Shown: positions 1-32,538 of the stretch, one piece after another
Position numbering within the stretch: position 1 is the first letter of the stretch
Layout: the number at the start of each line of letters is the position of its first letter
Sequence record: NC_047880.1
DNA: 64,000 bases
Reading direction: 5' to 3' (one strand)
The notes under the pieces: model-generated
What the model was told of the DNA's origin: nothing
The model's input: the letters and a program-made list of their open reading frames with translations, nothing else
Databases searched by the model: none
Made by a program: the position numbers and the translations under genes

Positions 1-1497
1 ATGGAAATGTTTTCGCTTGGCCTTGAAATCAGGGCCATCCGAACTATCACCAACTCTGATATAAAGTCTGCATACAGAACGGTCATGATGGGCCGTCTGT
101 CTGTTGCTCATTTCAGTAGTGAGGTCACTCGTAAGTCTTTCCGCCGTCTGTCTAAGATGGTAGAAGTACGAAACGAAATACTTGATTGGGAAGATTTGCT
201 GGAAGACCCGAACTTGGACGAAGAGTTCAGGGATAGTCTGCGTGAAGCAGATGAAGTACCAGCGAAAGGCATGAAAGGATTCGACAAGATATTCGACGCG
301 CTTGAGAAATACAGGCAGCGCCGTGATATCATGAACATCGGCAAGAAGATTGCAAAAGACTTTGAAGAAGCTGATACAGAAGACTTCGACGAACAGCTTT
401 ACATGCAGACGCTTGGCGATAAACTCAATCAAGCCCAGAAGGGCACACGCTCCACAGAAAAGGTTTGGACGTTTGGTGGCAAGAAGTCTAATGCTATGAA
501 ACTCGCCAAGCAAGTAATCAACAACCCGAAAGAAGTGATGTACAAGACTGGCTTTAAATCGTATGACGACAAGAACGGCGGTTGGCCTACTACTGGTGTC
601 GTACTGTTAGCTGGTTCTACTTCTGGCGGTAAGTCTGTGTTGTCTATGAACGTTGCAGACAACATGGCGAACATCAACGGTATTCACTGTTTGAAAGTGA
701 CACTTGAGATGACAGCCGAACAGGAAATGAAACGTATGCTCTCGATGATGAGTGGCATACCGTTCTGGAAGATCAAGCAGGGTAAACTGAGCGGTCGTGA
801 GAAGAAAGAACTTCTCAAAGCGATGGCGAAGTATGACAAAACAATCCGCAAGAACAAGGGACGTAACTCGTTTACCAGCCCAGAGCGCGGCATGTCGATT
901 GATGATGTGTTGTATATGTCTATCCCGTATGGCGTTCACGTAACCTTCATCGACTACGTTGGTCTGTTAGAAGGTATTGACAACGATAACCAGTGGCGCG
1001 AACTCTCGACAGTTGTTCGTAAAGCGAAAGTACATGCGAATGCGACAGGTCAGCTTGTTGTTATTCTGTGTCAGCTTGATGACCAGTCTGGTCGTATTCG
1101 TTACTCTGGCGGTATGCGTGAGCACGCCGACGTTGTGTGGGCTTGGAACTATTCAGACCCAGAAGTACGTGAAGGTAAGATCATTCCTGTTCAGGTAATG
1201 AAAGCGCGTGACGGCGAGCTGTTTGAAATGGCTCTGCAAGATGCGTTTGAAGTCATGCAAGTTAAAGACACGGCAGAAGGAACTGTGGTTCCTCAGAAAT
1301 CTTCTGCTATCGCTTCTGATGACGTCCCTTCTGGTAAAAAGAAATTCGGAAAAGGTAATTTCAAGAAAGATAAGATTGAGATTAAGAAGTCTCGTCGTGG
1401 TGCTGCTGCATTCCTTAGCACAGGTAATGAGCCTGATGACGAAGACGACGACCTTCCGAAGAAGAAGAAAAAGCGTAAGTCCTACGCTGTTTCATAA
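1..1497 (+). CDS. dnaB: DnaB-like replicative DNA helicase (5' end may extend beyond window)
   Basis: Walker A GSTSGGKS, SLEM-like TLEMT, Walker B FIDYVGLL, ILCQL and KARDG arginine-finger motifs; Lys-rich C-terminal tail. Confidence 0.85.
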   Translation: MEMFSLGLEIRAIRTITNSDIKSAYRTVMMGRLSVAHFSSEVTRKSFRRLSKMVEVRNEILDWEDLLEDPNLDEEFRDSLREADEVPAKGMKGFDKIFDALEKYRQRRDIMNIGKKIAKDFEEADTEDFDEQLYMQTLGDKLNQAQKGTRSTEKVWTFGGKKSNAMKLAKQVINNPKEVMYKTGFKSYDDKNGGWPTTGVVLLAGSTSGGKSVLSMNVADNMANINGIHCLKVTLEMTAEQEMKRMLSMMSGIPFWKIKQGKLSGREKKELLKAMAKYDKTIRKNKGRNSFTSPERGMSIDDVLYMSIPYGVHVTFIDYVGLLEGIDNDNQWRELSTVVRKAKVHANATGQLVVILCQLDDQSGRIRYSGGMREHADVVWAWNYSDPEVREGKIIPVQVMKARDGELFEMALQDAFEVMQVKDTAEGTVVPQKSSAIASDDVPSGKKKFGKGNFKKDKIEIKKSRRGAAAFLSTGNEPDDEDDDLPKKKKKRKSYAVS

Positions 1498-2551: not shown

Positions 2552-5369
2552 GAAGGGCCCCGCCTTCACACTACGTCCTAAACGAATAGCTGCATTCGAT
2601 GCGCTGCTTGGTGACGACGTTGGTGTGGAGGAATCCTCAGACTTAGACTTCCTGTCTGATAATAATTCAAGCGGTATTAACTTCCTTGAGAAGGGCGAGA
2701 CAAACATTGTTGACTTGGTTGAGAGTGCTCTTGAACAGCGCACACTCGTACCACGCGACTTGAAGTTCGATGATAGCTCAATGCCTCGCGCAAAGAACTT
2801 CCTCGAATGGTGTACTAGCCCTGACTTCTTGAAAGCTGAACCGTATCTTGAGCAGGCCATGATCGGCCTTCGTTTGTTCGGAGAGATCTGTGTACGATGT
2901 TCCCCGAACTTGCAATGGCAACATACAGAAAACCACGAGCCGCAGGAAGGCGTCGCTGCTATTGAGAGGAATCTTCATCTTCTCCATAACGGTGTCTGCC
3001 CTCACTGCGGCGCTCGGCGTTCTGACATGATAAAAAAGGGAGAGATGAACTTCTACAACGAGCTGGCCGTGAATGCCGGACAACGTTGTGTTAGTGCTGC
3101 AACTCCTGTAACAACGCATAACGGTATCATGCCTATCGGTCATATGATGATTGGCCATGACAGCCCAGGCTTCCACAAGCCGCGTAACAAGTATCGTGCT
3201 CACAACGGACGTGAGATAAAGAAAGTCAGTCAAGTCTACGTGTCTACTGAAAGCCCGACACGTATCATTACGCTGTCTAATGGTATGCACTTAGAAGCAA
3301 CACACGAACATCCTCTGCGTACTGAAACAGGCTTTAAGAAAGCGCTTGTGATCACAGAAGGTGAACGTGTAGAAGTTGCTCTCGGTATAAACTCATGGGG
3401 CAAGATCATAACGCCTGTATCTATCTATGATGCTGGCCAGTCTACCCGTGAAGATGCCTTGCGTTATCTGACTGACAGATCGCTTCCGTTTAACAGCGGT
3501 TATATGTACGTCACTGACGACGAGAACGTTGCTCAGATGGCGTGGTCGATTCTGATTAACGCAGGCTACCTGCCGCAGATTAATCGTGACGACACGAAGA
3601 ACGAGTACAGCATTCTGTTTGATCTCAATGCAGAGTGTTTGAGACGTTCTGTGCATCTGCCTGTGATATCGAATGCAGAAGGTGAAACGAAAGTAACGTA
3701 TGACTTGCAGATGGAGGGCATGCCGCAGTTCGTGGCATCAGGTCTTATTCATCATAACAGCGGTAAGTCCGTTGTTGTTGCAATGATCTCAACGTATCTA
3801 ACGCATCGCCTGCTTATGTCGCAATCACCGACAGGCATCTTGGGTATCAGTAGCACAACTGTTCTTCACGGAACGTTCGTTGCTCTTACTCAGAAGCAAG
3901 CGTCTGATACACTGTGGACTCCGTACTTCAACTACGTGATGGGTAGTCCGTGGTTCCAAGCATATCATGATCTGATTCGCAGACACGAACGCAAGTTCGG
4001 TATTGAAGTGATGAAGGTTCGTGATACGTTCATTCTTTATGGTCATCGTAGTTTCGTTATTTATCCAGCAGGACCTGATGGTCGTATTCTTCGTGGTCGT
4101 ACACGTATACTCAGCGTAATCGACGAAGTGGCGTATTTCGACAACGACGCCCAATCCAAGAAAATCAAAGTCAGTGCCAACGCTGTATACGGAGCACTCG
4201 ACCGCTCACTCGCTACTGTTCGATCAGCAGAGAAGCGGCAAGTCGAGGCCGGATATGACGAAGCCTTCACGGGTTACTTCTGCAACATCAGTAGCCCGGT
4301 ACACGCTCGTGACAAAATCAACGAGCTGTTGCGTATGGCTTTAGGTAGTAAGACTCTGTTAGGCATTCATGCACCGACGTGGAAGATGAACCCAACCATG
4401 CCGCGTGATAGTGAGTTCCTGATAGAAGCATTCCGTCGTGACCCTGTAGGTGCAGCGCGTGACTATGGTGCAGAAGCTCCGTTGTCTGCAAGTCCATTCA
4501 TCACTCAGCCTACATTCATCTCAGATGCAATACGTGAGAAGGGTCGTAACCTGTGTCAGTACACGCATCATATCATTCGTCACAAAGACGGTGAGAGACA
4601 GCGTTACGGTAGTCTCGTTAAAGCTGCTTCGACAACTCGCGCTTCTATTCTCGCAATCGACGCAGGTTATTCGAATAACAGTTTTGCTTTGGTGACAGGC
4701 TCACGCGGTGATGATGGTATTATCAGCGTAGACTGTCTGGTTGAGATTGTGCCTAAGCCAGGTATACCTCTCAACTACACAATGATATTTGACGAACTGC
4801 TTATTCCTCTTTGTAAGTTGCGTAACGTGCGCGTGATGCTTGCCGACCAATGGCAGTCACTCAAGTTGCTACAGGATGCTAAACTCAAAGTTGAATCCAT
4901 CGAAGAATCTGATCAATACAGCCTGAAATATCAGGACATGTGGACAGTGAAGACGATGTTCGAATCGCAGCCGTCTCGCATTAGTTTGCCGCGCATGGTG
5001 AATACTAAGAATATCAATGAGACGTTGCAGTATGATGGTGATGAATATCCTCAGTGCTTTGAGAACAAGCCTACTGAACACTTGATCATGCAGTTGCAGA
5101 CAGTGCAAGATACTGGACGCAGCGTTATCAAGAACACAGGTGCAACAGATGACTTGTGGCGTGCAATGGCTCTCATGGTATACGGGTTCGAATGCGGTGA
5201 GTACGAAGACTACCTGATTAAAGCAGCGGAGACTTCTATCAACCGTGACCCGAATCGTCTTGGTCGTGTAGCGCACAGACTCAACTCAGGCACAGCAAGC
5301 ACAACACGCTCTGCTCTTCCTGGTCGAGTGCTAGGTTCAGCCGCTACTCGTATGCTTGGACGTAAGTAG
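2538..5369 (+). CDS. terL: terminase large subunit containing an intein
   Basis: After splicing Walker A reads NAGQR|SGKS; Walker B VIDEVAYF; coupling motif ISSP; RNase-H-like nuclease LAIDAG and terminal DDLWRA; followed by portal. Confidence 0.85.
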   Translation: MAKPKKGPAFTLRPKRIAAFDALLGDDVGVEESSDLDFLSDNNSSGINFLEKGETNIVDLVESALEQRTLVPRDLKFDDSSMPRAKNFLEWCTSPDFLKAEPYLEQAMIGLRLFGEICVRCSPNLQWQHTENHEPQEGVAAIERNLHLLHNGVCPHCGARRSDMIKKGEMNFYNELAVNAGQRCVSAATPVTTHNGIMPIGHMMIGHDSPGFHKPRNKYRAHNGREIKKVSQVYVSTESPTRIITLSNGMHLEATHEHPLRTETGFKKALVITEGERVEVALGINSWGKIITPVSIYDAGQSTREDALRYLTDRSLPFNSGYMYVTDDENVAQMAWSILINAGYLPQINRDDTKNEYSILFDLNAECLRRSVHLPVISNAEGETKVTYDLQMEGMPQFVASGLIHHNSGKSVVVAMISTYLTHRLLMSQSPTGILGISSTTVLHGTFVALTQKQASDTLWTPYFNYVMGSPWFQAYHDLIRRHERKFGIEVMKVRDTFILYGHRSFVIYPAGPDGRILRGRTRILSVIDEVAYFDNDAQSKKIKVSANAVYGALDRSLATVRSAEKRQVEAGYDEAFTGYFCNISSPVHARDKINELLRMALGSKTLLGIHAPTWKMNPTMPRDSEFLIEAFRRDPVGAARDYGAEAPLSASPFITQPTFISDAIREKGRNLCQYTHHIIRHKDGERQRYGSLVKAASTTRASILAIDAGYSNNSFALVTGSRGDDGIISVDCLVEIVPKPGIPLNYTMIFDELLIPLCKLRNVRVMLADQWQSLKLLQDAKLKVESIEESDQYSLKYQDMWTVKTMFESQPSRISLPRMVNTKNINETLQYDGDEYPQCFENKPTEHLIMQLQTVQDTGRSVIKNTGATDDLWRAMALMVYGFECGEYEDYLIKAAETSINRDPNRLGRVAHRLNSGTASTTRSALPGRVLGSAATRMLGRK
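3087..3758 (+). mobile_element. 224-aa intein in terminase Walker A, endonuclease degenerate
   Basis: Begins CVSAATPV (block A), has ATHEHPL (block B), ends GLIHHN followed by Ser +1; no intact LAGLIDADG pair. Confidence 0.9.
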
Positions 5370-12640: not shown

Positions 12641-13411
12641 ATGAGCAATGTAGATAAAACAATGCCTCAAGGTAAGTGGGAATTCAACGAGCCTGTTGCT
12701 GCTGTGTTTGATAACATGCTGGCCAACTCTATTCCTTCTTATGACCGTATGCGTGACCTGACGTTTCGTCTGGGTAAACGTTTCGTAACACCAGGCTCAG
12801 CTATTGTTGATCTCGGTGCATCACTCGGTCGTGCTATCGAACCATTCTGTGAACACTTCGGTCCGTACATGTATCATCATGCAGCAGACCGTCCTGAACC
12901 TGATTCTGAAACAGGCAATCTCTATTCGCTGTATGAGACTGCTCCTGCAATGCGTGAGCGTCTCGCACAGAACGCAGTGTTGAACGCAGCCGAAGCGAAA
13001 CTCGAATCAGAATCGCTTGTGGACGTTGATACGTTCCGTTTCAGTGAGCAAGTCGAATGCTCTTTGATTCTCAGCGTGTTAACTTTGCAGTTCACTCCGA
13101 TTGAACACCGTCAGCACATTCTGGAAAAGGTCTATGACTCTTTGCAGTCTGGTGGTGCATTCATTCTCGTTGAGAAAGTTCTCGGGGATGATAATTATCT
13201 GGACAAGCTGCTGGTAGATACCTACTACAGCATGAAAGGTGATAACGGTTATTCACAAGAAAGCATTGCGACTAAGCGCAAGTCACTCGAAGGTGTTCTC
13301 GTTCCAGTGAAAGCCGCGTGGAATGAAGAACTGCTCCGTAAAGCGGGCTTCAATCGCGTCGAATGTTTCTATCGCGATCTCAACTTTGCAGGTTGGATTG
13401 CTGTTAAATAA
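12641..13411 (+). CDS. cmoA: CmoA-like carboxy-S-adenosylmethionine synthase
   Basis: WEFNEPVAAVFDNMLANSIPSY matches CmoA N-terminus [42 protein letters not shown] with Arg213 (codon 13277) aligning to E. coli catalytic R199. Confidence 0.85.
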   Translation: MSNVDKTMPQGKWEFNEPVAAVFDNMLANSIPSYDRMRDLTFRLGKRFVTPGSAIVDLGASLGRAIEPFCEHFGPYMYHHAADRPEPDSETGNLYSLYETAPAMRERLAQNAVLNAAEAKLESESLVDVDTFRFSEQVECSLILSVLTLQFTPIEHRQHILEKVYDSLQSGGAFILVEKVLGDDNYLDKLLVDTYYSMKGDNGYSQESIATKRKSLEGVLVPVKAAWNEELLRKAGFNRVECFYRDLNFAGWIAVK

Positions 13412-13412
13412 A

Positions 13413-13422
13413 TCTGTAAACA
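13413..13422 (+). promoter_or_regulatory. CTGTAAA(C)A motif
   Basis: Intergenic, before the RBS of 13437. Confidence 0.45.
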
Positions 13423-13436
13423 GTAGAGGTTAGAGC

Positions 13437-14309
13437 ATGAGTTCTACAGCGGCCATACGCGAGAAAGTTCGCTCGGCATTATTTGCGAGTCATAACAAGC
13501 CTGTCGATATGCGACAAGCGTTGATGGACACTTTGAGTTGGATTCCGAAAGAAGACCAAGTTACTGTGTTCATGTCGGGTGGCATTGATAGTCATGCTTG
13601 CTTGTTTGCTTGCATCGACCTAGGCCTCAAAGTTAACGTGCTGTCGTTCACACTCGACTCACACGAAAGCTCTGACTTCAAGGCAGCGAGACACGCAGCC
13701 GAAGTTTTCGACCTTGACTTCACGCCGATTGTTCTTCCAACGAACGAAGCCCATCTGAAAAGCTGGGTACGTTTCGCAGTACACAAGCTCGGGCTCACGA
13801 ACAAAAGTGAGATCGAATGTTCTTGGCCGCTGTACACCGCAATCCGTCATCTTGAAGGAAAGACCAAACATATCGTACTCGGTCTTGGCGGCGACTCGTA
13901 CTTCTTAATGGCAAAGAGCGCTTCGATGCACTGCAAAGACTTAGTGTTAGAGCAACGTCGAAAAGCTACGCGCCGTGTGCTGTCTCAGAACGTTCTCGTT
14001 AAGCGTGAAGCTTTTGCTCGTGGTATCTACGCGCATCTTCCGTACTTCGAGTTCGGTCGCACTTACGCAGAGCTGCAAATGGAAACCGACTTTAAAAAGA
14101 TCAACAGTCCGCAGAAGTCGTTTTACAATCAGGCATTCCCTGAGTATCGCAAGCGCTGTAAAGTACGCGGCCACCAAAACTTCCAGCTGGGTGACACTAA
14201 CATTAGCGGCATCTTTAGCGACGTGTTGTTGAAGTCCGACTGGAACACAAGAAACTTGAAAGCAATCGTTGGCGTATACAATGACGTTGCATCAGGAATC
14301 TGTAAATAG
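13437..14309 (+). CDS. PP-loop ATP pyrophosphatase, asparagine-synthetase C-terminal-like; probable amide ligase (CmoY-like)
   Basis: FMSGGIDS PP-loop; LGLGGDSYF resembles GEGADELF; no glutaminase domain; adjacent to cmoA. Confidence 0.75.
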   Translation: MSSTAAIREKVRSALFASHNKPVDMRQALMDTLSWIPKEDQVTVFMSGGIDSHACLFACIDLGLKVNVLSFTLDSHESSDFKAARHAAEVFDLDFTPIVLPTNEAHLKSWVRFAVHKLGLTNKSEIECSWPLYTAIRHLEGKTKHIVLGLGGDSYFLMAKSASMHCKDLVLEQRRKATRRVLSQNVLVKREAFARGIYAHLPYFEFGRTYAELQMETDFKKINSPQKSFYNQAFPEYRKRCKVRGHQNFQLGDTNISGIFSDVLLKSDWNTRNLKAIVGVYNDVASGICK

Positions 14310-14316
14310 TAATTTG
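14297..14316 (+). promoter_or_regulatory. overlapping CTGTAAATA and AGTAATTT motifs upstream of the DPA peptide
   Basis: AATCTGTAAATAGTAATTTG, 60 nt before ATG 14376. Confidence 0.55.
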
Positions 14317-14375
14317 AGTAAGCACTGATAATCAGTCTGCTCTTAACATAAACCCAAATCCTTAAGGAGCGCATC

Positions 14376-14525
14376 ATGCGTCATATCGACCCAGCAGTAC
14401 GTTTTAACGATCCAGCCATCACTGACCCAGCAGCCCGTTTCGATCCGGCCGACCCTGCTGATCCAGCAATCGGTTTTGATCCGGCTGACCCAGCAGATCC
14501 TGCTGACCCGGCTGCTCGCTTCTAA
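14376..14525 (+). CDS. 49-aa Asp-Pro-Ala repeat peptide (below ORF-track cutoff)
   Basis: MRHIDPAVRFNDPAITDPAARFDPADPADPAIGFDPADPADPADPAARF; AAGGAG RBS 14364-14369; synonymous codon variation across repeats; terminator downstream. Confidence 0.85.
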   Translation: MRHIDPAVRFNDPAITDPAARFDPADPADPAIGFDPADPADPADPAARF

Positions 14526-14541
14526 TAGCGAAACTTAATAC

Positions 14542-14570
14542 AAGGGGGCTGCTCATTGCAGTCCCTTTTT
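14542..14570 (+). terminator. Rho-independent terminator
   Basis: AAGGGGGCTGC-TCATT-GCAGTCCCTTTTT. Confidence 0.8.
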
Positions 14571-14593
14571 ACTTTCCTGTTGAGGAACGTGCT

Positions 14594-15232
14594 ATGTCTT
14601 TTGAGCTTGTAAACATTCTGCCGATACTGTCGCAATCAACTACAGTTCATCGTGCAGCCGACGGCACTGATGTTCACATCGTCCGAAACTTCTTCACACA
14701 TACGGAATGCGAAGCACTAATCGCTGAGGGCATTCAGTATCTCGAACCGAGCCGTGTTGGTGGACCGAACGATACAACTAAGATCGATAAAACAGTTCGC
14801 TCGTCCTCTACTGCGATGTTAAGCGAAGTATCTCAACACCCTGCTGTACTCGAAGCTATTCGTCGCATTGATGACGCATACGGTTACCCACATCTGTTCA
14901 GCAACCCGCTGCAACTCAATCGCTATCAAGTCGGTGAAGAGTTCGTAGCGCATCACGACTGGCATGACCCTGTTCGCCAGCATGATCGTATTCAACGTGA
15001 AGGCCAACGCACTTGGACCTTCTTGATGTACCTCAACGATGACTTCGAAGGCGGTCAGACTGAATTCCCGTTGATGGATCTCACAGTAACTCCTGAGCGC
15101 GGTATGCTTGTTCTGTGGAACAACTTGCTTGTTGACGGTTCAGTCAATGAGACAACGCTACACGCATCGAAGCCTGTAACGTCAGGTACGAAGTTCATGA
15201 TGACCAAATGGTTTAAGAACAAAGTGCTGTGA
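14594..15232 (+). CDS. 2OG-Fe(II) oxygenase, prolyl-4-hydroxylase-like
   Basis: LQLNRY-x-x-G-x-x-F-x-x-HHD (HxD), TFLMYLND-x-x-EGGQTEFP, LHASKPVTSGTKF; Lys as the 2OG ligand, as in P4Hs. Confidence 0.9.
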   Translation: MSFELVNILPILSQSTTVHRAADGTDVHIVRNFFTHTECEALIAEGIQYLEPSRVGGPNDTTKIDKTVRSSSTAMLSEVSQHPAVLEAIRRIDDAYGYPHLFSNPLQLNRYQVGEEFVAHHDWHDPVRQHDRIQREGQRTWTFLMYLNDDFEGGQTEFPLMDLTVTPERGMLVLWNNLLVDGSVNETTLHASKPVTSGTKFMMTKWFKNKVL

Positions 15233-15239
15233 TAATCTT

Positions 15240-15257
15240 GGGTAGCTAAGGCTGCCC
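15240..15257 (+). terminator. GGGTAGC-loop-GCTGCCC hairpin
   Basis: Member of recurrent hairpin family; weak U tract. Confidence 0.5.
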
Positions 15258-15283
15258 ATTGTCGTATCTAAGGTTCAGGAAAG

Positions 15284-15293
15284 TCTGTAAATA
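15284..15293 (+). promoter_or_regulatory. TCTGTAAATA motif
   Basis: Intergenic, 30 nt before ATG 15324. Confidence 0.55.
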
Positions 15294-15323
15294 CAGAATA
15301 AGATTCCTCTGAGGATAACTCAA

Positions 15324-15932
15324 ATGATAGTTCGTATTATTGACGGAGATATTGGTGCGACGTATGTTGCCGAGCAACTGCAAGCTGCTGGCATTGAATG
15401 TACAGTGCATTCACCAAACAATCCCCGTGCTCGTGCGCGTTATGCGCCTTATCCTTCTATGTCTATTAGTCTTGACCAGCTTCTTATCGAGCGTCACATC
15501 GGTGATGTACTCGGTACGTATCGCGGTATCTTCCTGATTAGTAGCTATGCAGGTTCTTTGATTGCAAACAGCATGATTGATCTTTGTGGTCAGTCCAACA
15601 ATATCATTACGTGTGATAAACTCGACTGCGGTAATGTTCCTGTTGCAGCCACCAAGCTTTCTGTAAATATCTATCAGAAGCAGCGCAAGCTGGCTCGCAT
15701 CGCTCGTCGTGTTCCGCACTATGAGTCCGACCATGAGTTTATCATTGCGGATAATACGGTTCAGGCTCTCTCGTATCCAGAGCTAGTACAGAAAGAAGAT
15801 ATCGAACTTAACAACAAGCCGAAGTTTCTTTCTAGTCCTTCGCTGATCGTTGCTGCAAAGCGTCTGGGTATTAAAAGCAACACGTACCATAACTATGCCG
15901 GCCTTGTGAAAGAGTTTCTCGCCGCGCGGTAA
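15324..15932 (+). CDS. hypothetical protein with degenerate Rossmann-like N-terminus
   Basis: VRIIDGDIGATYVAEQLQAAGIECTVH resembles a beta-alpha-beta dinucleotide fold; GAGGA RBS. Confidence 0.6.
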   Translation: MIVRIIDGDIGATYVAEQLQAAGIECTVHSPNNPRARARYAPYPSMSISLDQLLIERHIGDVLGTYRGIFLISSYAGSLIANSMIDLCGQSNNIITCDKLDCGNVPVAATKLSVNIYQKQRKLARIARRVPHYESDHEFIIADNTVQALSYPELVQKEDIELNNKPKFLSSPSLIVAAKRLGIKSNTYHNYAGLVKEFLAAR

Positions 15933-16684: not shown

Positions 16685-17183
16685 ATGAAACAACAACTGC
16701 TTGATCGTGGCTTCGACCACGAACGATATCATTGCTGGTTAAGTGAGACACAGATGACTGTGCCTCTATTCGGATTTGATCGTCAACTTCATGGCGTTCA
16801 AGTCTACACACCAGACGCACCGAAACAAACGTCGAATCCGAAAGATGCTCGTTACTTCACGCGCACGTTCGGTGGCAAGCAGTTGGTGTGGGGAACAGAA
16901 ATTGAACCTATACGGGTCGACCGTATTCTTAACTGAGTCCGTGTTCAAGGCATGTGCTGTTCATCGTCTTGGACTCAACGCTTGGTCTGTATTAGGTTCT
17001 AATGTCAACGATGCTCTGTACCTTCAACTGCGTCTGCTTGGCCTGAGATTTGTCTGTCTCGGTGATGCGGATAAAGCTGGTGAAGAGTTCAGTCAAACGT
17101 TTGGTCTTGGTGCAGTATCAAAAGACCTTGACGAAATGACTGACGCAGAGCTACTGGATTTAACTCGTCCTTTCTTGAGGTAA
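16685..17183 (+). pseudogene. Toprim-domain primase-like gene split by a frameshift near 16890-16901
   Basis: Frame A gives VPLFG...RYFT...LVWGTE; the +1 frame continues LNLYGSTVFLTESVFKA...GDADKAG...KDLDEM. Confidence 0.7.
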
Positions 17184-18607: not shown

Positions 18608-19450
18608 ATGACAGCAATAAGCCCAATCCGATATCAAGGAAATAAGCGCAGCCTAATACCCTTGATTTTAGAGAACGCTCCTTCTGTTAAGGACTGTTCT
18701 CGTTTCATTGATGCGTTCGGCGGTAGTGGTACTGTCTGCTTGAATATGCCTCAACCGTTTCGCGTGTACAACGAACTCAGTCCTCAGGTGTTTGAGATCG
18801 TCAAGATGCTGTCAGAGCAAGACCCGAAGAAAACTCTGTCACAGATTAAGCGTGTTGTGAAACACTGGGCGCTGACGAACAGTAGTGAGACGAGTTACGA
18901 CGACTTCCGTGTTCACGTCCAGAAGAAGCGTACCCCGTTACTGCATTATGTTGCGCACAGACACTCACACTCCAACATGCTACGCTTCAATCAGCAAGGC
19001 ATATACAATGTGCCGTTCGGTGCTCGTGGTCTGATTGGAAAGTTCGATGAACTTGAGCATGAGCTTGTGCAATTCCATGAGCGTATGCAGGGTGTGCATC
19101 TGACTAACCTGCGCTACAATGACTTGCTCGGTCGAGTGAATCACCAGCTTAACAGCAACACGTTCTGTTACTTCGACCCACCGTATCTGGCAAGTGGTGC
19201 AATGCAGTACGGAAAGTGGACTGAACGCAATGAGCGTAACCTGCTTTCGATGCTGGAACATCTAACTCGCCTTGGTGTTCCGTGGATGTTGAGCAACGTT
19301 GTCGAGCACAGACACTTCAAGAACGATTTGTTGAAACGTTGGTTGAAACGTTGTGCAACGACCGTACTCTATCCGAATAAAACATACGCACTGGCAAATG
19401 GTCAAGGCGGTTCACACGGTACTGTTGAAATTTTAGCAATGAACTACTAA
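18608..19450 (+). CDS. dam: DNA adenine N6-methyltransferase (Dam/D12 class)
   Basis: SPIRYQGNK, FIDAFGGSG (motif I), YNVPFG, YFDPPY (motif IV), MLSN. Confidence 0.9.
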   Translation: MTAISPIRYQGNKRSLIPLILENAPSVKDCSRFIDAFGGSGTVCLNMPQPFRVYNELSPQVFEIVKMLSEQDPKKTLSQIKRVVKHWALTNSSETSYDDFRVHVQKKRTPLLHYVAHRHSHSNMLRFNQQGIYNVPFGARGLIGKFDELEHELVQFHERMQGVHLTNLRYNDLLGRVNHQLNSNTFCYFDPPYLASGAMQYGKWTERNERNLLSMLEHLTRLGVPWMLSNVVEHRHFKNDLLKRWLKRCATTVLYPNKTYALANGQGGSHGTVEILAMNY

Positions 19451-29702: not shown

Positions 29703-30407
29703 ATGGCAAAAATTGCTAAAGCAAAAGCAAAGGACGGGAAAAAGAAAGGCGCTATGGCTATTGATTTGAAATCTTTCAAGTCGGCTAAACAGCTTAAAGG
29801 CGCTAAGTACAATCCACGTTTCATTACAGACAGTCGCTTGAGCGCACTCGAAAGTTCGTTGGGTAGCTTCGGTGACTTGTCTGGCATCGTGTTTAACAAC
29901 AGCGTCAGTTCAGGCGTTCTTATCTCCGGTCACCAGCGTCTCAAGTCCATCAACGATTGGGAAACGCGCATCGAACTCCAGCCTACTTCTGACAAGTACG
30001 GTACAGTCGCTTTGGGTTACGTTCATGCAACGCATCCGAAGTCGAGCAAGACGATTAGCATTCCTCTGCGTATCGTAAACTGGAACGATAAGAAAGCCGA
30101 GTACGCTGCGAACATTGCTGCGAATGCGCACGGCGGTGAGTTCGATAACAAGAAGCTTGCGAATCTGGTTGAGAAACTTGACCTGACTTCAATCAAGCCT
30201 CAACTGCTCGGACTCGACCCGCTGGAAATCCGTGGTCTGCAACAGAAGCTGAAATCACAAGCACTTGTTGAAGGCGAGAAACGCGCAGGCAAAACTACTG
30301 GTCAGATGAACGGTAGTACGGGCGCATTCAAAGAATACACACCAGATGAAGTCGGCGATAAGCTGTCATGCACCTGCCCACGCTGTGGATTTAAGTTCGA
30401 GGGATAA
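29703..30407 (+). CDS. ParB/sulfiredoxin-like N-terminal domain protein with C-terminal Zn ribbon
   Basis: KYNPR...SFG...IVFN...LISGHQRL; ends CTCPRCGFKF. Confidence 0.8.
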   Translation: MAKIAKAKAKDGKKKGAMAIDLKSFKSAKQLKGAKYNPRFITDSRLSALESSLGSFGDLSGIVFNNSVSSGVLISGHQRLKSINDWETRIELQPTSDKYGTVALGYVHATHPKSSKTISIPLRIVNWNDKKAEYAANIAANAHGGEFDNKKLANLVEKLDLTSIKPQLLGLDPLEIRGLQQKLKSQALVEGEKRAGKTTGQMNGSTGAFKEYTPDEVGDKLSCTCPRCGFKFEG

Positions 30408-30408
30408 T

Positions 30409-32538
30409 ATGATCATCAAGCCGCCTACAATGAAAGAGATCAACGCGCAAGACAACAAGTGGCGTGGCATGAGCTTCTTCGCAGGCTGTGGTGGTTCTTC
30501 TACCGGTCTCAAATGGGCCGGTATTAACATCATCTTGAGTAATGAGTTCGTAGACGTGGCGCGTGAGTCTTATCAAGCGAACCACCCATCTACGTTAGTT
30601 CTCCCTCACGATATCCGTCGTCTCGACCCGAAGAAGATTATGCAGCACTTCGGGATGGGTAAGGGTGAACTTGATTTCCTCGATGGTAGCCCACCATGCT
30701 TCACTGAGAACACTCTGATTCACACTGCTGAGGGGATGAAGTTCATCTCTGATGTTAATGTCGGCGACATGGCAATGACTTCTGTTGGTCGTTATCATGA
30801 AGTGTACGATACTATGGTGCGTCCTTATGTTGGTACGATGCACAAGATCGAAACACTGCTCGGCTCGAACAACGCAACGCCTGAGCATCCGTTCTTCATT
30901 CGCCGCGTTCAACCTACTGGCTTGTGGTCTGAACCGTTCTGGTGTGATGCGAAAGATGTACAAGAAGGTGATTTACTCTCAACACCTCGAACAACTCCAG
31001 ACATGGGCGCTGACGCTTATCATGGTCAAATGTCATTGCTGACGCCTGTCATTCAGAGCTGGGTAACTTACCCTGAGTTCTGGTGGGCTATCGGTCATTG
31101 GTGTGCGCACGGTACACTTGAAGTTGTGCAGGGTGTCGATGTTGTTAGCTTCGAATCACACACAGCTCAGGAAAACGATCTGATTGAGCAGGTGTTTGAT
31201 GTTCTGAAAATCAGTAGCATCAACAGCGTAGACACAACCGTTGATCAGCGCAAGACCTATCGCGTTGTCATGGATTCAGAACTGTTCGCGTTCCTGAGCA
31301 AGTTCGTGGCACAGGGTAAGAACAACCTGTCTCGTCGTCTGCCGTCGATGATCTTCCACTTAGCTACTGAACTGAAACAGCAATTTATTCTCGGCTATCT
31401 CGGTCGTGACTACGTTAGTGCAATGGGCATGAGCCAGTTAATCAGCACAGACAACCGTCGCTTCCTCGCTGAGATGAATTACCTGACGTGCTCTGCATTC
31501 AACAGACCTCTGTTCGATGGTATGTTGTTCTCTGATGTGAACTACGGTTCAGCGCTTACGCCTCGTGATCGTAATCAGAAGAAAGAACATGTTGGTTATC
31601 TGCTGCTGCAAGATGAAAACAATTTCTTCTACGAGTTTAACGATAACGATCCACATCTGTGGGTTCAAGTGATCGAGAACCTCGCGTATCAGACAACCTG
31701 TGACGTGTACAACTTCTCAGTCAGTGAAGACGAGACGTATGTGGCGAACAGCATTGTCGTGCATAACTGCAAAGGCTTCTCGACGGCTGGCGTGAAAGAA
31801 GAAGGTTGGGGTAAAGAAGTCAAGTACAGCGAGAACAAGAAACAGCAGGTTGATGACCTGTTCGATCAGTATTGCCGTATGATCAGTGGCTTCCAGCCTA
31901 AAGTGTTCACAGCGGAAAACGTCAGTGGTCTTGTGAAGGGATCTTCTAAAGGTTACTTCCTTGAGATCATGAAAACGTTTGACGAGCTGGGCTACTATGT
32001 CAAAGCACCGTTGATTAACAGTGCATGGCTTGGTGTTCCACAGTCGCGTGAACGTATCATCTTCATGGGTGTGCGCAAAGACGTTGCACATGCGTTGGGT
32101 TATCGCTCAATCGGTACTGCTGTGCCTGCTGTCGTGCCTGCTTCTAGCATGGCTGTGCTTGCTGATGCTCTGCCTAACATTCTGCGATACAAATCGGCTG
32201 AGAAAGATATCATTAAGTATAAGCCCGCGATGAACGGACCTATGCCTACGATAACTGCTGCTGATGCGATTGCGTATGAGACGGCACGATTCTCTTCTGC
32301 TGGGTTTATCGAAGACAACAAGGGCATTCGTCGTAAGCTTACGATTGATGAACTGAAAGTTGTTTCCGGTCTACCTGCTGATTACAAGCTGGTCGGTAAG
32401 TTCGAACAACAGTGGGAACGTCTCGGTCGTATCTGCGTACCTCACATGACTCATGCTGCTGCGACTGCGTTGATCAATCATATTCTTGTGCCTTACGCCA
32501 AGAAGAAGAAACAGAAACCGGGCGCTCTCTTCCGTTAG
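30409..32538 (+). CDS. C5-cytosine DNA methyltransferase homologue with intein; probable carboxymethyltransferase (CmoX-like)
   Basis: FFAGCGG (I), GSPP|C (IV), AENVSG (VI), QSRERIIF (VIII), motif X reads LGRICVP in place of GN(A/S)VP. Confidence 0.85.
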   Translation: MIIKPPTMKEINAQDNKWRGMSFFAGCGGSSTGLKWAGINIILSNEFVDVARESYQANHPSTLVLPHDIRRLDPKKIMQHFGMGKGELDFLDGSPPCFTENTLIHTAEGMKFISDVNVGDMAMTSVGRYHEVYDTMVRPYVGTMHKIETLLGSNNATPEHPFFIRRVQPTGLWSEPFWCDAKDVQEGDLLSTPRTTPDMGADAYHGQMSLLTPVIQSWVTYPEFWWAIGHWCAHGTLEVVQGVDVVSFESHTAQENDLIEQVFDVLKISSINSVDTTVDQRKTYRVVMDSELFAFLSKFVAQGKNNLSRRLPSMIFHLATELKQQFILGYLGRDYVSAMGMSQLISTDNRRFLAEMNYLTCSAFNRPLFDGMLFSDVNYGSALTPRDRNQKKEHVGYLLLQDENNFFYEFNDNDPHLWVQVIENLAYQTTCDVYNFSVSEDETYVANSIVVHNCKGFSTAGVKEEGWGKEVKYSENKKQQVDDLFDQYCRMISGFQPKVFTAENVSGLVKGSSKGYFLEIMKTFDELGYYVKAPLINSAWLGVPQSRERIIFMGVRKDVAHALGYRSIGTAVPAVVPASSMAVLADALPNILRYKSAEKDIIKYKPAMNGPMPTITAADAIAYETARFSSAGFIEDNKGIRRKLTIDELKVVSGLPADYKLVGKFEQQWERLGRICVPHMTHAAATALINHILVPYAKKKKQKPGALFR
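30697..31767 (+). mobile_element. 357-aa intein inserted at the catalytic Pro-Cys; degenerate LAGLIDADG blocks
   Basis: Starts CFTENTLI; ATPEHPF block B; ends VYNFSV...IVVHN then Cys +1; WAIGHWCAHG and FILGYLGRD are decayed endonuclease motifs. Confidence 0.9.

Follow-up and report, generated by a model that had tools for sequence, protein, structure and literature searches.

Gene gp018 of the Erwinia amylovora jumbo phage vB_EamM_Y3 (261 kb; NC_047880.1), whose bases 1-64000 constitute the window analysed here, encodes a stand-alone ligase of the asparagine synthetase type. Its sequence and predicted fold indicate that it is probably a member of the CmoY family of ATP-dependent amide ligases, a known type of enzyme in which it represents a new clade. 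This ligase would adenylate the carboxylate of 5-carboxymethylcytosine (5cxmC) in phage DNA and couple it to an external nucleophile. We give this reading, which draws on homology, fold, gene context and operon structure and takes its putative chemistry from the characterised enzyme SpCmoY, a probability of about 0.55. Two further genes, one for a small peptide made of proline/acid repeats (gp019) and the other for a homolog of prolyl 4-hydroxylases (P4H; gp020), are constant companions of the ligase in its clade. This association is unreported so far, no other paper dealing with it having been found in the literature.

The gp018 protein (290 amino acids (aa), ATG start) is annotated as 'asparagine synthase' in GenBank. 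It carries the PP-loop motif SGGIDS (residues 47-52; nucleotides (nt) 13575-13592), and its residues 41-159 match positions 19-133 of the Pfam profile Asn_synthase (24.4 bits; cut-off 21), the C-terminal half of the protein lying outside this match. Scans with Pfam and curated models reveal no glutaminase domain in gp018 and, since it has no such domain to deliver ammonia, the enzyme would need an external nucleophile. An AlphaFold2 model built on 22 homologs (predicted local distance difference test 93.3; predicted template-modelling (TM) score 0.89) has as top fold matches in the PDB the synthetase domains of E. coli AsnB, human ASNS, beta-lactam synthetase and carbapenam synthetase, with TM-scores of 0.61-0.68 (normalised to query length); QueC, LarE and TtuA come far down the ranking. 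AsnB and the beta-lactam and carbapenam synthetases share with gp018 the fold and the PP-loop ATP pyrophosphatase motif, and their acyl-adenylate chemistry would match. However, gp018 has neither an N-terminal glutaminase nor a pseudo-glutaminase domain and is 13-20% identical to them.

The protein is conserved in 20 protein clusters (36-98% identity) and matches phrog_26038 (E 2e-178). A tblastn comparison aligns its residues 29-286 (89% of its length) with SpCmoY at 27% identity (E 4e-14). Furthermore, 22 residues, including the motifs PQK and HQNFQLGD of the C-terminal half, are invariant across six ligase clades, SpCmoY included. The relationship is a distant one, gp018 falling in the tree in a clade separate from SpCmoY, and the isoelectric point (pI) of gp018 is 9.2 versus 5.8 for SpCmoY. 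All ligases of the clade with peptide and P4H genes are basic (pI 9.2-9.5), and their peptide-less relatives are basic too. No relatives of gp018 were found in bacterial genomes at the sensitivity of the scan used, and a metagenome scan yielded three further loci only.

The pathway in which such a ligase would act was described in the Synechococcus phage S-B43 by Yang et al. (Nat Commun 2025, December; PMC12783734). CmoA produces carboxy-S-adenosyl-L-methionine (Cx-SAM); CmoX, a C5-methyltransferase homolog with an SPPC motif and an active-site Arg350, writes 5cxmC into DNA; and SpCmoY, a glutaminase-less asparagine synthetase homolog, carries out the ATP-dependent ligation of glycine to 5cxmC in DNA (PMC12783734). 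In S-B43 virion DNA, the modification is found at ~10% of C and 75% of GC sites (PMC12783734). In the glycine-type cluster, pocket residues bind the carboxylate of glycine; other CmoY ligase clusters have different pockets, with amines that are yet to be found according to the authors, and a ParB-like gene paired with cmoX was reported for CmoX loci (PMC12783734).

In Y3, the product of gp017, a gene directly upstream of gp018, matches E. coli CmoA (4gek) over its full length (E 5.7e-29) as well as phrog_4752, and its match to TIGR00740 (E 2.4e-41) is under the equivalog cut-off. The gp050 gene lies 16 kb from gp018, and the best PDB match of its product is 8yf3_A (E 2.4e-52), which we take to be the deposited crystal structure of SpCmoX. 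The gp050 protein has retained GSPPC, and the residue aligned with R350 of SpCmoX is R674 ('ERLGRICVP' versus 'ERVGRMVPP'), this Arg replacing the motif-X Asn. Homologous loci, largely from metagenomic contigs, were compared with Y3 and are designated here by L numbers. In eight of them (L009-L011 and L100-L104), the ParB-like gene, cmoX, the ligase, the peptide gene, the P4H gene and cmoA form one co-directional cluster, and the cmoX stop codon overlaps the start of the ligase gene in L009, L010, L101 and L102. Homologs of the ParB-like gp049 adjoin cmoX in L009, L010, L011, L019 and L100-L104.

The Cmo pathway of S-B43 has in common with that proposed for Y3 a CmoA homolog, a C5 transferase with SPPC and Arg, a glutaminase-less ligase of ~270-290 aa and a ParB-like neighbour of cmoX. 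Unlike Y3, it has no peptide gene and no prolyl 4-hydroxylase homolog, and the cmoX of Y3 contains an intein and lies remote from the ligase gene. A sequence-only reading of gp018, made beforehand, proved largely right. It had described an adenylation-only protein of the AsnB fold needing an external amine, which the SGGIDS motif, the fold matches to synthetase halves and the lack of a glutaminase domain bear out. It had also listed carboxymethylcytosine among the candidate carboxylates, and the SpCmoY alignment, the adjacent CmoA gene and the CmoX-type gene in the genome make this the best candidate; its suggestion that the product of the ligase may be undescribed is supported as well. What it did not mention is that this type of enzyme had already been characterised as CmoY.

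The gp050 gene carries a class-1 intein of 357 aa (C97 to H452-N453, followed by C454), whose insertion point is precisely the motif IV catalytic cysteine, so that the +1 extein Cys is the nucleophile of the enzyme; gp050 must splice out this intein to be active. The spliced junction GSPP/CKGFSTAG equals the sequence of the intein-less L009 ortholog, which fixes the boundaries of the intein. The cmoX ortholog of L011 also has an insert, and most other orthologs have none. In L100, a 293-kb metagenomic phage contig, a gene for a type II chorismate mutase (3718-4161) is found between cmoX and cmoA; it would raise the supply of prephenate, the co-substrate of CmoA. A search of the literature for DNA modification or restriction resistance in phages of the Y3 group returned nothing.

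The ligases that are accompanied by the peptide and P4H genes form one clade in a maximum-likelihood tree (support 96/93), with 55-100% ligase identity. In 11 of the 12 lineages of this clade, the ligase gene is directly followed by the peptide open reading frame (ORF) and then by the P4H gene. Besides Y3, this block was seen in Yoloswag, L009/L010, L011, L100, L101, L102/L103, L104, L106 and L107. It remains together while cmoA and cmoX change position among the loci, and clustering of all neighbouring ORFs indicates that P4H and the peptide alone are specific to the clade. The CmoY paper mentions neither gene, and the words 'oxygenase' and 'hydroxylase' are absent from it (PMC12783734). The sequence-only reading had named the peptide as a candidate but had missed that the peptide and the neighbouring prolyl hydroxylase accompany the ligase in a conserved, clade-specific manner.

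Outside the clade, the sister ligase L019 has a DUF1611 protein (3899-4975) as its companion instead, and no peptide. More distant Y3-like jumbo phages have at the same position either no accessory gene or a cassette of three, namely an unknown gene, an alanine-racemase-like one and DUF1611. Y3-like jumbo phages differ in what they carry between cmoA and the conserved genes further downstream, this slot being a variable cassette. For example, SNUABM_35 has the ligase alone in this slot, and Erwinia phage pEa_SNUABM_3 (L006 1719-5816) has a 420-aa unknown protein, DUF1611, an alanine-racemase-like protein and a distant ligase. These variable cassettes suggest that several different amines are used, possibly including D-amino acids.

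The gp019 peptide contains exactly ten Asp and ten Pro, and its gene is the only proline/acid repeat ORF of its kind in the 64-kb window. The orthologous peptide ORFs (22-49 aa, all with a pI near 4) consist of tandem proline-plus-acid repeats. Their units vary by locus (DPA, DPE, EPE, NPE(R), NPEI, APEI), each with one Pro beside an acidic residue, and the number of Pro equals that of acidic residues in 9 of the 12 full-length ORFs. A ribosome-binding site and an ATG are present at the peptide ORF in all 12 orthologous loci, and a hairpin with a T run is found 3' of every one of these ORFs. Within one peptide, the repeat units keep their amino acids and vary at third codon positions; since amino-acid identity was the criterion by which the units were picked, it is the third-position variation alone that carries information. 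With its own ribosome-binding site, ATG and terminator, the peptide gene resembles substrate-level precursor genes.

Some minor observations also concern this gene. Its 150 nt include five GATC sites, which come from GAT-CCN codon pairs and may be coincidental; Y3 encodes a Dam-like adenine methyltransferase with a DPPY motif (gp029; window 18608-19450). In a wastewater metatranscriptome (run X18), two 151-nt contigs, both 100% identical to the window (14236-14386 and 14482-14632), bracket gp019; they are the only X18 pieces matching the 2.4-kb stretch 13000-15400 and are too few to be taken as expression data. A second RNA-labelled run contains one piece at window 14455-14605. The two metatranscriptome pieces at the peptide gene are no more than a hint of an abundant short RNA.

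The P4H homolog gp020 matches PF13640 (2OG-FeII_Oxy_3; E 1.6e-15; 58.3 bits, cut-off 27), and its closest solved relatives are peptidyl-prolyl 4-hydroxylases, i.e. the Bacillus anthracis P4H 3itq (E 1.4e-23) and 5c5t (E 9e-13). Its ligands of iron and 2-oxoglutarate (2OG), H120, D122, H190 and K200, are invariant in 11 orthologs. Judging from these residues, the gp020 family is catalytically intact and closest to P4Hs that act on peptides. It shares the His-x-Asp...His triad and the 2OG-binding Lys with the P4Hs of B. anthracis and of the Chlorella virus PBCV-1, the latter of which accepts short Pro-rich repeats, and gp020 adjoins a proline-repeat peptide gene. Unlike for these enzymes, the presumed substrate of gp020 would be the product of a dedicated micro-ORF of 22-49 aa beside a DNA-modification ligase, not a structural protein.

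At 79 other phage loci with a P4H homolog, there is no cmoA, cmoX, ligase or adjacent Pro/acid repeat ORF, and the idea that P4H and peptide form a general phage module was rejected on this ground. In L024, an unrelated 56-kb viral contig without Cmo genes, a 60-aa ORF with ten V-E-P repeats (550-670, minus strand) lies 4 kb from a distant P4H homolog that is 33% identical to gp020; this may be another pairing of a P4H with a repeat peptide.

Table 1. Features of the ligase locus and of the remote cmoX locus of phage Y3 (positions in the 64,000-nt window)
Feature	Position	Strand	Basis
gp017, CmoA homolog (carboxy-S-adenosyl-L-methionine synthase)	12641..13411	+	TIGR00740, 4gek, phrog_4752
gp018, stand-alone AsnB-type synthetase-domain ligase, probable CmoY family member	13437..14309	+	Pfam, AlphaFold2 model, SpCmoY alignment
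Shine-Dalgarno AAGGAG, 6 nt 5' of the gp019 ATG	14364..14369	+	read from sequence
gp019, 49-aa acidic peptide, ten D-P-A units, pI ~4.1	14376..14525	+	ORF and repeat reading
Intrinsic-terminator-like hairpin (11 bp, 6 GC; 14542-14568) and T run	14542..14578	+	16 nt past the gp019 stop
gp020, 2OG/Fe(II) peptidyl-prolyl 4-hydroxylase homolog	14594..15232	+	PF13640, 3itq, conserved ligands
gp049, ParB-like, 5' of cmoX	29703..30407	+	annotation; no Pfam domain match
gp050, CmoX-type DNA cytosine C5 transferase with intein (nt 30697-31767)	30409..32538	+	8yf3_A, SPPC, R674

In the mechanism proposed here, the CmoA homolog gp017 would make Cx-SAM, the CmoX-type gp050 would place a carboxymethyl group on C5 of cytosines of the phage DNA, and gp018 would adenylate the carboxylate via its PP-loop and couple it to an external nucleophile. 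The P4H homolog gp020 would hydroxylate the prolines of the abundant proline/acid repeat peptide, and the pair could, as a tentative extension of the scheme, supply or tailor the amine donor for ligation to 5cxmC. Either host peptidases would release hydroxyproline or a short hydroxyproline peptide as the amine, or the whole peptide would be joined through its N-terminal amine. A donor derived from the peptide and P4H is favoured because the pair is strictly linked to one clade, other ligase clades have different cassettes and the peptide gene is laid out like that of a substrate. In animals, we know of no source of free hydroxyproline other than collagen breakdown.

Attachment of the whole peptide to 5cxmC, which would turn the virion genome into a programmed peptide-DNA conjugate, is improbable. 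The window contains 4058 GC dinucleotides, and at a density like that of S-B43 a peptide of 2-5 kDa would roughly equal the DNA in mass and could not be packaged. A small donor would therefore fit dense modification better, and the whole peptide would be possible with rare sites.

Besides this packaging problem, several observations weigh against the proposed scheme, either against its core or against the peptide and P4H as the source of the donor. An identity of 27% is insufficient to fix the acyl substrate within the AsnB superfamily, and the chemistry proposed for this clade is borrowed from SpCmoY. The association of peptide and P4H has a single origin and could be a matter of co-inheritance. 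The only ligase positions separating the clade from all outgroups are L64, L132, L201 and Y210, none of which is charged, and clustering of neighbouring ORFs reveals no peptidase or other third partner conserved with the block. The locus L105, nested in the clade on a long branch, has a cmoA that overlaps the ligase gene and has lost P4H. In place of a full-length peptide gene it has an 8-codon ORF only (4977-5003), which begins with M-R-N like several full-length peptides and has a ribosome-binding site and a terminator; an unrelated 244-aa protein without Pfam match is encoded 3' of it. A ligase that is kept with cmoA but with neither P4H nor usable peptide speaks against the pair as donor. 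Since L105 keeps cmoA and the ligase without P4H, it is the Cmo pathway, not the peptide, to which the ligase would be tied.

The lineage that comprises L106-L110 and the Salmonella phage Sen-NF (77-81% ligase identity, short branches) has to be counted among these observations too. Ligase, peptide and P4H genes are intact there, 3' of a RecA-like gene. No homologs of cmoA, cmoX or ParB are found in the 58 kb available of an 88-kb contig of L106-L110, nor in the 108-kb record of Sen-NF, which holds coding sequences (CDSs) only, and IMG/VR contains no contig of this lineage. The data on this lineage being incomplete, the Cmo genes may be located elsewhere; otherwise the block would function without 5cxmC. 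It should be emphasized that the Sen-NF record (GenBank PV359490.1; L004, L111, L117, L118), labelled as a complete genome of 108.5 kb, strings CDSs together head to tail: the coordinates of nearly every CDS adjoin those of the next, and the ORFs under ~100 aa that are found in the related L108/L109 are absent. The apparent absence of the peptide from Sen-NF is thus an artefact of a record that lacks intergenic DNA. Peptide loss in this phage was rejected, absences from such a record not being biological evidence.

With the same core chemistry on 5cxmC, the amine could also be an ordinary cellular one, such as glycine, another amino acid, free proline or a polyamine. P4H would then hydroxylate a DNA-borne N-acyl-proline, or the pair would produce an independent hydroxylated acidic peptide. 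The use of free glycine by SpCmoY (PMC12783734) fits such an amine, as do the ligase and cmoA of L105 without P4H, the sister ligase L019 without peptide and the small number of clade-specific ligase positions, four in all and uncharged. This version is nevertheless rather unlikely, as it does not explain why the peptide and P4H occur only with this clade, directly downstream of the ligase and inside the cmoX-cmoA operon.

Somewhat doubtful as well is an autonomous module of the kind known for ribosomally synthesised and post-translationally modified peptides (RiPPs), in which the acyl substrate of the ligase would have switched to the Asp/Glu side chains of the neighbouring peptide. These side chains would be amidated, or joined to the N-terminus or to the hydroxyls of hydroxyprolines made by P4H. 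This would yield a modified acidic peptide, which might serve as a DNA mimic or an anti-defence factor, for example, and 5cxmC would be left undecorated. The AsnB superfamily does include enzymes acting on peptides, such as lasso cyclases. The side chain of Asp is chemically identical to the carboxymethyl group, which makes it conceivable that a DNA-modification enzyme was recruited to peptide chemistry. Such a module would also account for three genes that stay together as a block and for the intact block in the Sen-NF lineage, where cmoA, cmoX and ParB were not detected, and the equal numbers of Pro and acidic residues in most peptides would fit one site per enzyme per repeat.

However, the module requires the acyl substrate to change, whereas among CmoY ligases it is the amine that is known to vary. 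It leaves unexplained both the overlap of the cmoX and ligase frames and the operon order in eight loci, and L105 keeps ligase and cmoA without a usable peptide. In addition, the acidic residue shifts in identity and in its side relative to Pro (D-P-A, D-P-E, E-P-E, N-P-E, A-P-E) between ligases that are still 55-80% identical, and the absence of cmoX from the Sen-NF lineage rests on incomplete data. The sequence-only reading had counted ten Asp in the peptide correctly; as carboxylates for the ligase they are less parsimonious than 5cxmC. The Y3 block is like RiPP clusters in having a short terminator-flanked precursor ORF of repeated units beside two tailoring-type enzymes. Unlike them, it shows no division into leader and core and has neither a recognition-element protein nor a protease, and it is embedded in a DNA-modification operon.

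It is very improbable that the small ORF is a regulatory leader rich in Pro and Asp codons, with an attenuator controlling P4H. Every locus does have a short ORF rich in few codons, followed by a terminator just 5' of P4H. However, the pairing of the ORF with the 5' arm of the terminator is no better than in shuffled sequences in 10 of 11 loci (shuffle fraction 0.12-0.97), and classical attenuation by the peptide ORF was rejected for this reason. The terminator begins only 6-32 nt past the stop codon, which leaves no room for classical alternative stems, and the repeat positions without a regulatory role (Ala, Ile) are conserved within peptides as well.

That gp018 is another PP-loop enzyme (a QueC-like 7-deazaguanine enzyme, an asparagine synthetase or a lasso-type cyclase) is scarcely credible, despite its GenBank name and a weak match to Pfam QueC (23.1 bits, cut-off 22) that covers the PP-loop region only (residues 43-100). 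A genuine asparagine synthetase B was rejected as gp018 lacks the N-terminal nucleophile (Ntn) glutaminase domain and scores far under the equivalog cut-offs (TIGR01536, 25.1 bits versus 267.1; NF006949, 16.7 versus 499). QueC was rejected on its TIGR00364 score (20.8 bits, cut-off 150.3) and on its 33rd rank in the fold search (TM 0.36). Lasso cyclases are two-domain proteins of roughly 600 aa that have a B-protein as protease/recognition partner; this identity was rejected for gp018, a single-domain protein of 290 aa with no homolog of a lasso B-protein among its conserved neighbours.

On the preferred reading, i.e. ligation of an amine to 5cxmC in DNA, the locus defines one CmoY-family cluster with an amine to be found, and does so in two cultured phages of Erwinia amylovora, Y3 and Yoloswag. 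The search for the missing substrate of the ligase has two concrete leads, both specific to the clade, in the peptide and P4H. As these phages are easily grown, the question of the amine is directly testable. If the peptide is the donor, a RiPP-style precursor and a protein hydroxylase would, for the first time, be seen to feed the modification of a nucleobase, and the range of chemistry for enzymatic DNA labelling would widen. To our knowledge, there is no precedent for a link between ribosomal peptide tailoring and DNA hypermodification. A comparison can be made with thymidine hypermodifications (e.g., N-alpha-glycinyl-thymidine), in which an amino acid is likewise attached, after replication, to the substituent at C5 of a phage DNA pyrimidine. 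However, these use a phosphorylated hydroxymethyl handle instead of a carboxymethyl one, depend on other enzymes and involve neither a ribosomal peptide nor a hydroxylase.

Elsewhere in the window, the annotation has two overlapping ORFs for the DNA primase (16685-16936 and 16902-17183); a frameshift, a gene split in two or an artefact of annotation could account for them. Y3-like phages are present in food, wastewater and insect metagenomes.

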